Source: Phaeosaccion multiseriatum
Taxonomy: Eukaryota; Protista; Ochrophyta, other classes
Reading direction: 5' to 3'
NCBI GenBank assembly: GCA_965112735.1
Contig: OZ218959.1
Location: 2,852,001-2,916,000 of the forward strand
DNA: 64,000 bases
Part shown: piece after piece, positions 38,113 through 41,900 of the stretch
Layout: every line of letters begins with the position of its first letter
Position numbering within the stretch: position 1 is the first letter of the stretch
Translations under genes and position numbers: made by a program
The notes under the pieces: generated by a model
Seen by the model: only the letters and a program-made list of their open reading frames with translations
What the model was told of the DNA's origin: nothing
Database searches by the model: none

Positions 38113-41100
38113 TCACATGGCGCTCTGACCCGACCCGATGCAGCCTGGGCATAACCAATCTCCCTGTGGCACCTCCGTAAGAGGGGGCTTGAGGCACCCG
38201 AGGTGGTACTCTGCACCGCAGTACAGCCTTCGCCATCACAGAGTATCGTTGTCTGTCCTGCCACCTGGTCGAGATGGCAGACGGTGCACGCTGTGCCAAC
38301 CCTTCGCTTCTTGCCCTTGTGCATGTCTGCGTAGCTCCCACGACCCCCGGCAGTTGATGGGATGATGTCGTGGTCACCACGGCTCCCACCCTCTGTTGGT
38401 GTAGCGTGGTTCCTTCTTCGTCATCGCTTTCTGAGGACGGCGCTTCTTCTTCGTCTCCCTCTTGTTCCGCGTCTTCGTCTGAGCGTAGGCCTCTACTCTC
38501 CCTGTCGATCCTCTCCCTGCTTGCTGGATTCACGGCATCGCCCATGGCTACATACTCCTCGTCAGTAACGGTAAAGCCCATCAAGCGCCTGGTCAGAAGC
38601 GACTGGCTGGTGCTCACATTTCTGGCGCTGTCTTTCTTGCTGCTGCCTGCTGCCTGCGCCGCCCTCTTTCTTTTTTGCGAGCGCCCTTCCTTTCCGACAG
38701 AAAACTCGACGAAGCTATATACCGCGCTGCTGAACGATGACAGCTCCCCGTGAATGGCTTCTGCGCTCACGTTTGCATCGTGGGTGTGGCGATACACTAC
38801 CCCACTGCTGTCATTGACGACGTCGTGAGCCATGTCGAAGTACCCCACCCTGGGGGTGGCAGGCGTGATGGTCTTCACTGCCTTCACGCGCTTTCCACCG
38901 CTTCTGCGGACCTTCTCGAACACCTGCTTTATGTCTTGCTGCAGTTGGCAAAGGAAAAAAAGCTCACCACCGCCCTGCGCCGCTTTGATGAAGACCACGT
39001 CCCCCTCCCTGTACATGAGCTCTGTGTACCTGCTGTGCTGCATCGTCCCTGCCCCTAGCCCCCGGCGCTGCTTGAGTTCTTGATAGAAGGCTCGAAGCCG
39101 GTGTCCTCGTTACCTCGGCCCTCGTTCTTGTCAAAAGCAATCGCCAACGGTAGGCAGGGCCCCGACCTCGGCCTTTCCCTTGTCTGTCACCCGCTTCGAG
39201 CGAGGCGGCTTCAGGAGTCGAGCGGCGCGGCGTAGGAGCTCGAGGTCAGCTGCTCGCGCTGCCTGCTGCGCCCGGGTCTGGAAGCCTAGCGGGATCTTCC
39301 TCCTCACGAAGATAGGGTCCGCGACGCGCCGACAGTTGTTGTAGGAATGGTGGTAGTGACCACGGTGCTTTCGCTGGCCGCTGGATGCGCTGTCTCTTCG
39401 CTGCCTCAAGCGACACTCTTTGTCGTCCTCGCAGGAACTGAAGCGCGTCTGGAACGATGCAGTCCTTTCGAGGTGGGTGAAGCTGGTCTCTACATTTAAC
39501 GTGAGGACCGACTTGGCCTGGACCATGGCCGTCTTCTCGCCTGGCACACCCTGTTAACATTCCAAGGAGCAAGCAATGAGTGAGGAAGTATCCAAAGGGT
39601 CAACGACGAGCGTGCACAAGGTAGTCATTGCTGATGGGAGTCGGAGGCGGGGGGGGGAGATGGGTGGAGTGCATGAGGCATGCATGCGGGCAAGGGTCTC
39701 CACTCCAGCACCAGCTGCCTCGGCTTTGCTTCACTCACCATTCCCTCCAGCCTCTTGTACGTTTTGGATATGGCGGTGCCCGCGCACCTCAGGCTCTTCC
39801 TAACCGAGGGAGAGAGGGCCCCCTCTGGCCCCTGCACGGATGCGACACTCTTCCCTGTCTGCTTTGCAGCCTGCTCCGCCATGTCCTTAAAATGCATGTT
39901 CGCAGAGGCCAGCTTGACCGCCGTCTCACTCAGCGACTTCGCATTCCTGTGCATGTCAACGCCATTGACAAGGTAGGGCTCGAGAAGCTGGGCCGCCTTG
40001 GCCACGCAGCGGATCGCAGGCAGTAGTCGTTCCGCAGTAGGGTACATGTCCGTGAGAAGCCTGAGGCATTGCCCACCGGTGTCCGAGAAGGCAAAAGATT
40101 TGCTCCCACCGAGGAAGGTGCCAAAAGTAGGCATGTACGGTGCGACCGCCGTGGCTGTCCCGCTTGCGCTGCTCTTGCCCGCGTGGTCATTGCCCAAGCC
40201 GCCTGCCAACACCCGAGAAGACCACTGCCCAGTGTATTCATTCTTCCACACAGCCTTGATCGAGTTGTGACCTTGATCAGTCATGAACATAAGCTCTTTC
40301 GCCGACACGCCTGGTAGCACACCATGCGGCGCTACATACAAGCCACAGGGCTTGTCACCCACGTTCTCCATCACAAGCTGAAGAGGCGCTGGACGAGCTG
40401 CAGGCTCGCTGTGCTCCTCCACTAGACCCCTCGCTTCCCCTCCTCCCCCCGCCCCCCCCTCCTCATCCTCCTCCTCCTCCTCGTCGTCTTCCTCCTCCTC
40501 CGCCTCCTCCTCCTCATGCCCCTTCCCCCCCTCCTTCTCCTCGTCATGCCCTTGCTCAACGACCGGTCGACAAGGACTGCTGTGCGAGAGGGCAAGAGAG
40601 CCGTCGCGCCTGACACGTTCCCGGGTAGCTGCTCACACAAAAGCGTGTACAGGGCGGAAGCGGGATCGCTCGCTCGGAAGGAAAGCAGACCGAGCCCCCC
40701 CCCCAGACTTCGTGAGCTGCTGAGAGATGATGAGGTCGTAGTCCCGACATGATCCCAAGCCAATACACACAGAAATTGGGCATCGGAGGTGGGCGACGTG
40801 CTTAACTAGACTCCCTGAGGCGCTGTCTCGACTCTGCTGGTGAGCACAGACTGCCTTGAGGGCAATGACCCCCTTTTCCCCCGCGGAACGCCCCTGTCGA
40901 TCATCATCGTCCACACCATCCACCCCGCCCCCCTCTCCAGTCCGTGTGCGAGAGCCTGGTAGAACGGGCTTAATGCTAGCCACGTAAAGCTCGTTGTTCG
41001 TGCTGCTGCACACGTAGACGCAGTCATTCACCACTACCACCCCGCCCGTGCTCTTCAGACGATCATCTCGGAGTACGATGGTGCAATCCGCCGGCACATG

Positions 41101-41900
41101 CTGGGTTTTGATCATCACCATAGTACCACACACGGAGTCAATCAAACGTATCACACCTGACCCTTGGTGGTACCCTATCCCCATGGGGTTCTGGAAAAAA
41201 TCCTTGTTGTTTTCCCGCCACCACCTGTCCGGCCAATGGTTGTGAGGATGAAGGCACACTTGGCCTGGCGTTCTTCGTCAGTCAGTAGCGATTGGTTGCT
41301 GGGTACGTCACGAGCGCCAGCGCTGTCTCGATAGAAAACTTGTTCTTGTTCTTCACAGCCTCCAAGGGAAATGGCTTCTTGTACCGCCTCTCGCACCTTT
41401 TCATCGGCGTCGTGCCGGCGCGCGAGGATGCAACGCATTCCAGCAAAGTGCCCGACCTCAAACAAGAACCAGTGTGTACATCGAAGACCTTATGCTCTTG
41501 ACGACGTGAACGAGATCGGCGATGACCTCAAAGTCCTGATCCTTCTGTGCAACGCACTGTCACAGCATGTTGAGACCCGCAGCTGTCATGCGAGACGAAT
41601 ATGACGTAAAGGCTCTTGCAGACTCGACCCCACCTCTTTCAGCTCGTGCACACACGCTGGGGTAGTCCTCAGCTCCACATGGTTCCACCCCACAGCTGCC
41701 GCACCCCCTATGGCAGTCACAAAGGTCCTGTGCGTCTTCCCAAGTCACATCCTCGCCTGCTTGCACTCTGGTCCACACGTCTTTCAAGCACCCCATGCAG
41801 ACGCGAAGGCATCTCAACATAGTCCTGATGTGGGCCAACTCCTCCCCGCCCCCCCCCCCCCTTCCCCATCGGAAGCCAAGCTAAACTCGCCCCTCCTCCA
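38113..41900 (-). mobile_element. Decayed, 5'-truncated DDE transposase-like polyprotein (DxxH type) with NHL-like propeller insert, BAH/Tudor-like domain and PHD finger
   Basis: Frameshift-joined reading: Cys-rich block, YVIFVSHDSCGSQ (D 41585-41587), EVIADLVHVVKSIR (DxxH 41517-41506), NHL-like blades (LMFMTDQGHNSIKAV, FAFSDTGGQCLRLLT), intron 39738-39551, VLTLNVETSF (E 39488-39490), YREGDVVFIK...FFLCQL, acidic linker, and PHD C..C...[33 protein letters not shown]. The region has many frameshifts and few microsatellites. Confidence 0.7.

Follow-up and report, generated by a model that had tools for sequence, protein, structure and literature searches.

The locus and its protein

A 64,000-nucleotide stretch of the genome of the ochrophyte Phaeosaccion multiseriatum (contig OZ218959.1, positions 2,852,001 to 2,916,000; hereafter called “the window”) holds a series of short open reading frames (ORFs) on its minus strand, which together spell out a single decayed protein. 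The surrounding sequence is GC-rich (~58%), microsatellite-rich eukaryotic DNA, in which host genes for a leucine-rich repeat protein, two bZIP factors, a deaminase and Dcp2 have long open frames, and the decayed copy itself is flanked by an unnamed host ORF and a bZIP gene. The region from 37597 to 41877 on the minus strand (window coordinates are used throughout) is most probably an old, inert, 5′-truncated copy of a cut-and-paste DNA transposon with terminal inverted repeats (TIRs), which encoded a DDE (Asp-Asp-Glu) enzyme like those of the P element and THAP9.

An earlier note, based on the letters and their ORF translations, had joined short peptides across frameshifts into one protein with a propeller in its catalytic core, and had placed the element at 39131-41900. 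All of the peptides that it quoted are located on the minus strand, in three reading frames, at the positions listed in Table 1. One protein can be traced from ~41877 to 38131 across ~13-15 frameshifts, two or three stops and one GT-AG intron. The tblastn matches of metagenome proteins to the window run collinearly from 41799 to 38119 (E 9e-39 for P0015 and 3e-21 for P0003), and a hidden Markov model (HMM) of the family links the window pieces in order through the changing frames. Because of these collinear matches and the ordered HMM chain, the peptide series is not a product of chance, and the reading of one coherent minus-strand protein stands. The element continues past the limit proposed in the note, through a PHD finger, to ~37597.

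Table 1. Parts of the decayed copy, and the peptides first read from it
Feature	Positions	Strand	Basis or remark
First helix and end of third strand of the presumed core (GFRWGRGGGGG, ELAHIRTML)	41803-41877	-	Start of homology
Cys-rich block (CMGC...CDCHRGCGSC...C)	41650-41802	-	Aligns to the Cys blocks of P0007, L003 and L008
Peptide CMGC...CDCHRGCGSC	41802-41692	-	Cys block peptide
Second-Asp strand SHDSCGSQ (Asp codon 41587-41585) and DxxH motif ADLVH (41520-41506)	41506-41611	-	Alignment of relatives
Peptide YVIFVSHDSCGSQ	41608-41570	-	Includes the second-Asp codon 41587-41585
Peptide EVIADLVHVVKSIRSSMY	41529-41476	-	Followed by HWFL at 41474
Helical segment from DxxH to the propeller (HWFLFEVGHFAGMR, VKNKNKFSIETA, LLTDEERQAK)	41233-41505	-	Model helices 160-243
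Six-bladed NHL-type propeller	40048-41190	-	Aligns to L003 model residues 245-597
Peptide FFQNPMGIGY	41199	-	Quoted in the earlier note
Peptide KPCGLYV	40353	-	Quoted in the earlier note
Peptide LMFMTDQGHNSIKAV	40293	-	Quoted in the earlier note
Peptide FSDTGGQCLRLLTD	40089	-	Quoted in the earlier note
Helical segment after the propeller (MYPTAERLL...QGPEG...KRLEGM)	39739-40047	-	Model helices 596-710
Peptide QGPEG	39834	-	Quoted in the earlier note
GT-AG intron, 188 nt, phase 0	39551-39738	-	GTGAGT...AG
Catalytic-Glu exon (VLTLNVETSF, Glu codon 39490-39488)	39146-39550	-	HMM chain and alignments
Peptide VLTLNVETSF	39508-39479	-	Glu codon 39490-39488
Putative BAH-like and acidic linker region	38366-39037	-	Collinear with P0003, P0008, L004 and L006
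PHD finger	38131-38321	-	Family HMM, E 1.4e-8; alignment to P0008
Subterminal tandem array, 21-bp and ~32-bp units, TAATCAGTAATCAGGCCGG core	37614-37830	-	Matching arrays in relatives
Putative degenerate 3′ terminus, plus strand reads TCGACGCATCGAG...	37597-37613	-	17 nt beyond the array

Decay and truncation of the copy

According to a frameshift-aware alignment to P0015, P0007, L006 and P0008 and to the HMM chain, the reading frame changes near 41621, 41557, 41475, 41366, 41301 and 41233; the one at 41621 comes after the Cys-rich block, and the one at 41557 parts the second catalytic Asp from the DxxH motif. In the propeller, the frame shifts at ~40700 and at 40560-40430, the latter within a GAG/GGA microsatellite that has grown in one propeller loop of this copy. 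Further shifts lie in the Glu exon (near 39459 and at 39392-39422), at 39150-39065 (one or two, with stops at 39131 and 39110), at 38295-38337 and at ~38220, where the PHD finger is split. The coding frame avoids an additional stop, at 40633, by shifting around it. The ORFs of the relatives are open at every one of these places, and the breaks other than the intron are therefore true frameshifts. Moreover, independently assembled contigs from the sequencing runs that hold this sequence match the window gap-free and the neighbouring host genes keep long frames, indicating that the frameshifts are real rather than errors of assembly.

The single intron starts exactly 32 codons past QGP. Its GT donor occurs at the identical position and phase in L001, L006 and L007, and the intron described in the earlier note is real; L003 and P0008 are without it, the reading continuing through.

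Homology to the family begins at ~41877, beside a poly-C/G tract, and a bZIP host gene begins at 42204. No family-like sequence was found in the window upstream of ~41877, and nothing in the whole window matches the N-terminal region in which the relatives carry the first catalytic Asp (best E 0.26 with tblastn and 0.36 with the HMM). Thus, the copy is 5′-truncated and has lost its first Asp, and the frameshifts and stops mark it as decayed, both as the earlier note had proposed. It is unable to make protein or to move on its own. Since only one end remains, its mobilisation in trans is unlikely as well, and is probably not possible. The copy is a fossil, and also a warning for gene annotation, which would otherwise split it into several short genes.

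Relatives of the encoded protein

We searched 1.84 billion representative proteins exhaustively with HMMER, using the 265-residue piece at 39628-40422 as the query. The search returned only 14 matching proteins, which marks the family as rare. All of them are unnamed JGI or ENA metagenome proteins, so that the likeness to NHL-containing proteins of marine invertebrates, suggested in the earlier note, found no support. The six long relatives (P0003, P0004, P0007, P0008, P0015 and P0017) share 27-40% mutual identity, and two of them, P0003 (1072 residues) and P0008 (1064 residues), are intact ORFs running from the second Asp to a PHD finger recognised by Pfam. Homologous-protein searches from the family alignment and from a region of P0007 returned the query alone, and a pattern search of metagenome contigs for related loci gave 130 pattern matches, with 0 confirmed.

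The contigs of the relatives hold a conserved upstream region of ~210 residues, which closes in a strand with an invariant Asp (D1, in the variants MDGAAI, TDEMML, WDGAAI, RDGMAI and SDGMMI). In the Tara Oceans contig L008/L009, a single 572-residue ORF comprises this upstream region, the Cys block, the second Asp (D2) and the DxxH motif; the ORF directly after it, of 643 residues, encodes the Glu motif and most of the propeller. This distant marine relative (Tara Oceans/ENA) has 61% GC and an almost intron-free gene, and its two ORFs are 14 bp apart in different frames.

Members of the family are thus present in this protist genome, in JGI metagenomes from freshwater or soil, and in marine ones from Tara Oceans. 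Among the host's runs, further contigs resemble parts of the copy at 82-95% identity. The spread over these sources, with conserved TCGGCCCC ends and a conserved intron, indicates an old, widespread and unnamed lineage.

Architecture of the family and its propeller

The family members share one order of parts. The N-terminal portion consists of a helical region, D1, a third-strand-like strand with a helix, a Cys-rich block of ~65 residues and D2 within the motif xDCCG[SA]Q. The middle portion begins with PDxxHVxKSxRN and continues through ~85 helical residues with NKNK[FY]SxE[TS]A, the propeller, and ~115 helical residues leading to QQGPxGNFSRS. In the C-terminal portion, the Glu motif [LV]ExxFxxxR and the stretch (N)P[TS]..Q[FYW] are followed by a linker, a putative BAH-like stretch and the PHD finger. 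Each member that covers the positions in question has the same D1 and D2, the same D and H in DxxH, and the same Glu, and the D, CG[AS]Q and D..H..K are invariant across all relatives; the acidic and His residues are unchanged at 25-40% identity. The most conserved part of the family is the helical segment after the propeller, which in the window scores E 8e-54 with the HMM jointly with the last blades.

In order to view the beta-rich part, we used an AlphaFold model of L003:3171-5702 (844 residues, 23-row alignment), which has a predicted local distance difference test score (pLDDT) of 71 and a predicted template modelling score (pTM) of 0.70, with residues 155-710 mostly above 85. Residues 247-595 of this model form ~25 strands, and six four-stranded blades superpose on solved NHL domains. 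When the model was compared with the PDB by Foldseek, the top matches were the six-bladed NHL-type propellers Pizza6, PknD, TRIM71 and NHLRC2 (template modelling scores by target, 0.70-0.76). The ESM Atlas search returned NHL and SGL propellers and the VIA search NHL propellers, and P0007 matches Pfam NHL at 21.5 bits (cutoff, 20); the 265-residue piece of the window gave no usable match in the ESM Atlas. The beta-rich part is therefore a six-bladed NHL-type propeller.

In the same model, a strand precedes the second Asp, the DxxH motif stands where the next strand ends and a helix starts, and the helix that holds the Glu is of low confidence. P0003 has 557 residues between the Asp of DxxH (D35) and the Glu (E592), arranged as helices, propeller and helices. 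This layout places the propeller within the 557-residue insert between the two invariant motifs, which is the arrangement that the earlier note had envisaged.

Ends of the element and subterminal arrays

A perfect 23-bp inverted repeat, TCGGCCCCGGACACGACTTTTCA, marks the two ends of the L001 element (87-109 and 10813-10791), which are 10.7 kb apart. The TCGGCCCC end also closes L006 just past its array, and in L008 it lies 190 bp upstream of the gene. The TIRs of a cut-and-paste transposon are therefore seen in the relatives, and the window has a putative degenerate 3′ end at 37597. L001, L003, L006 and the window each possess their own tandem array of 31-33-bp units, a few hundred bases downstream of the PHD exon, and the putative terminus lies 17 nt outside the array, with the same spacing as in L001 and L006. 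This terminus, TCGACGCA, begins with TCG, is two bases off TCGRCCCC and is unique in the window. The 3′ boundary of the element is thus probably at 37597. TCGRCCCC itself occurs 4 times in the window, against 6.45 expected, with no occurrence at the expected place of the terminus, and neither a second terminus nor a second copy of the array was found within the window.

In contigs from the host's runs, the units of the array at 37614-37830, GGTTACAGTGTGCGCCGGCCA (21-bp) and TAATCAGTAATCAGGCCGG... (~32-bp), reach a depth ~250 times that of the adjoining sequence. Because of this depth, the motif must be highly repeated in the genome, probably as the subterminal arrays of many non-autonomous elements. 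An empty-site check in a second sample, X5, covered the left flank and was too sparse over the rest. One joint in the run contigs, 37707 to 42159, was considered as a possible deletion-derivative element and dropped, as it has just 22 nt on one side, in low-complexity sequence. At 38055-38071, between the subterminal array and the stop codon that follows the PHD finger, there is a telomere-like TTAGGG run of 2.5 units.

Of all ORFs in the elements, only the gene described here is conserved. The 10.7-kb L001 element has two more ORFs between its TIRs, of 243 and 712 residues (1399-4549, minus strand), which match no Pfam family and lack conserved counterparts in L003 and L004. They may accordingly be cargo or a lineage-specific second gene.

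Identity of the enzyme

Is the protein a transposase? The order of the motifs, the invariance of their D, D, DxxH and E residues, the TIRs of the relatives and the language-model features all point to a P-like DDE transposase, an identity that is likely rather than demonstrated. The conservation of this gene alone among the ORFs of the elements and the diverged look-alike contigs of the host genome agree with it. For residues 30-300 of P0007, the nearest named clusters were only TNP-like_RNaseH_N/GBD (score 0.75, a lead), and for the Glu segment of P0003 they were only TNP-like_RNaseH_C and THAP9_C (score 0.95, 204/256 features shared), where both scores, being for parts of a protein, are uncalibrated. 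Two separate pieces thereby point, in the correct order, to the N-terminal and the C-terminal half of the RNase H domain of P/THAP9. The first helical part of the insertion also gives a weak lead to the GTP-binding domain, TNP-like_GBD, by the same features.

Besides the lack of calibration, several results weigh against this identity. Pfam scans of the window pieces, the relatives and the cut-out core segments gave no transposase match up to E 10; the matches obtained in these scans were PHD and one NHL alone. Searches of PDB sequences and profiles yielded no transposase, with weak matches to NHLRC2 and PHD alone. The AlphaFold model of L008:245-1822, the ORF with D1, the Cys block, D2 and DxxH, has a pLDDT of 46.8 and is unusable, and the helix of the Glu is of low confidence in the L003 model; because of both, the RNase H fold proposed in the earlier note is not demonstrated. 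A THAP domain was not found in the N-terminal ORFs of L001, L003, L004, L006, L007 and L008. The putative terminus at 37597 is not an exact match to TCGRCCCC, and the target-site duplication (TSD) is unreadable, as the flanks of L001 differ and the window copy has one end. Within the copy, no piece matched a Pfam family or a PDB sequence; this includes the Cys-rich block and the BAH-like/linker region, neither of which has a match in Pfam. Pfam PHD is matched by the relatives.

These gaps leave room for other explanations. The absence of a transposase match with HMMER in Pfam or the PDB, the failure of the core to fold in the model, and the other large ORFs of unassigned function enclosed by the L001 TIRs would all suit a cellular or captured NHL-PHD chromatin protein that sits within TIR elements moved by another enzyme, its D, D and E being coincidental. 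We consider this very improbable, since acidic and His residues would hardly stay invariant at such low identity by coincidence, and since the Glu segment scores 0.95 to TNP-like_RNaseH_C. Furthermore, conservation among the elements is seen for this gene but not for the additional ORFs of L001, L003 and L004, and the L008 gene begins so close to its TCGGCCCC end that there is no space for another gene. It is barely credible that the copy is instead a live multi-exon host gene, such as a domesticated transposase, with introns at the frame changes. One of the breaks is indeed a true intron, and D2, DxxH and E are retained in the window, but the ~13-15 frame changes fall where the relatives stay open and often come within 60-100 nt of one another, which is too tight for introns; in addition, the linker contains stops, the region of the first Asp has been lost and the PHD finger is split mid-domain.

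The remaining alternative concerns the placement of the enzyme within the DxxH group. The DxxH/CxxH motif is shared by hAT, Kolobok, P, MuDR and Dada (PMC3706591), and a protein in or nearer to Dada, Kolobok, hAT or MULE could owe its P-like features to ancestry shared by the whole group. Dada elements in particular measure 4.7-11 kb, have long multi-exon transposases, live in protists, make 6-7-bp TSDs and in some cases bear an extra whole domain in the core (PMC3706591), and the family studied here shows no THAP domain. However, Dada elements lack TIRs and target small RNA genes, whereas the 23-bp TIR is present here and the window copy adjoins a bZIP gene; moreover, both language-model searches gave TNP-like/THAP9 clusters alone, with the N and C halves correctly ordered. 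We therefore regard a placement outside the P-like enzymes as distinctly unlikely.

Comparison with known systems

The closest functional match to the P-like transposase proposed here is P/THAP9. The insertion domain of the P element transposase begins at D(2)H and is located between beta5 and alpha4 (PMC8230255, PMC7776569), and the second Asp, DxxH and Glu of the L003 model follow this layout. The two systems share the order D...D...D(2)H...large insertion...E, with the insertion starting from the D of DxxH, as well as TIRs with subterminal repeats and the language-model match to the TNP-like N and C halves. The stretch (N)P[TS]..Q[FYW] after the Glu motif is presumably also present in P/THAP9, and serves as a lead alone. 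The differences are considerable. The insertion of the family is ~557 residues with an NHL propeller, as compared to the ~190-residue helical GTP-binding domain in P; an extra Cys block precedes the second Asp; the P-type C-terminal domain is replaced by a BAH-like stretch with a PHD finger; and no THAP was found, nor do the Pfam models of the P family match. The THAP domain is reportedly confined to animals (PMC7776569).

Members of the P superfamily have an 8-bp TSD. The insertion domains of DDE enzymes such as Tn5, Hermes, RAG1 and P are small and mostly helical, with roles such as hairpin formation and GTP binding. In the RAG recombinase, a DDE core works with a six-bladed propeller and with a PHD finger that reads histone tails, and RAG1-RAG2/Transib-ProtoRAG therefore offers the same list of parts as the present family. 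There, the propeller is of the Kelch type and, with the PHD finger, belongs to the separate RAG2, not to the interior of the catalytic domain. No link to RAG or Transib was seen in sequence or features.

Dada elements resemble the family in their DxxH-type DDE enzymes, long multi-exon genes and protist hosts, and in the foreign domain (an exonuclease) within the core of some of them. They have no TIRs and insert in small RNA genes (PMC3706591); the relatives studied here include L001 with its TIRs, and the window copy lies by a host ORF and a bZIP gene. In Dada, the extra domain comes before DxxH, D2 and E are ~176 residues apart, and the zinc fingers are placed differently (PMC3706591). The NHL propellers of NHLRC2, TRIM71/LIN-41, SOQ1 and PknD are 10-16% identical to that of the family, and are terminal, free-standing binding modules in those proteins, rather than inserts in an enzyme core.

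In the family libraries and papers searched, there is no description of a propeller in the insertion domain of a transposase or of a transposase with NHL and PHD, in agreement with the earlier note, which knew of no named family with this architecture. Among the DxxH/P-like transposases, the family stands as an unusual new variant. A whole six-bladed propeller at the insertion site, with a Cys cluster and a PHD tail, would be a transposase design not seen before, and would provide a natural single-chain counterpart to the RAG1-RAG2 list of parts. That the family forms a separate, undescribed superfamily-level branch of the DxxH transposases, in which one chain joins the core, propeller and PHD parts that are split between RAG1 and RAG2, is unlikely. 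In such a branch, the propeller and PHD finger might read chromatin or a partner protein and thereby choose the landing site, as modules like those of RAG2, either an independent example or a distant echo of them; this too we would give only a small chance.

Proposed mode of action

Catalytic core: Judging from the motifs, an intact P-like enzyme of this family would comprise the helical N-terminal region and D1, both lost in the window copy; a Cys block, presumably zinc-binding, between the first helix and the fourth strand; D2; the DxxH that opens the 557-residue insertion; the Glu helix; the BAH-like stretch; and the PHD finger. Its D, D and E residues would be held on an RNase H fold, and would cut and join DNA as in the P element transposase.

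Insertion and tail: The propeller may replace the GTP-binding insertion domain, or may be an addition to it. The PHD tail could steer the enzyme to chromatin.

Neighbouring genes and repeats

Two bZIP ORFs are located just upstream of the truncated end, at 42204-43484 (plus strand) and 44422-46188 (minus strand), with Pfam bZIP_1 matches of E 5e-8 and 1e-9, respectively, and both contain long poly-Q/CAG runs. Very long trinucleotide arrays of the GGA/TCC type occupy 600-1050, 5130-5950, 26090-26400 and 31100-31550, some of them within ORFs on either strand; together with other microsatellites, they drown a repeat search of the whole window. Finally, an array of GACAGACAGA-type units, spaced by 12, 25 and 37 bp, extends over 49850-50470 and overlaps the minus-strand ORFs at 49560-50396 and 49829-50467.

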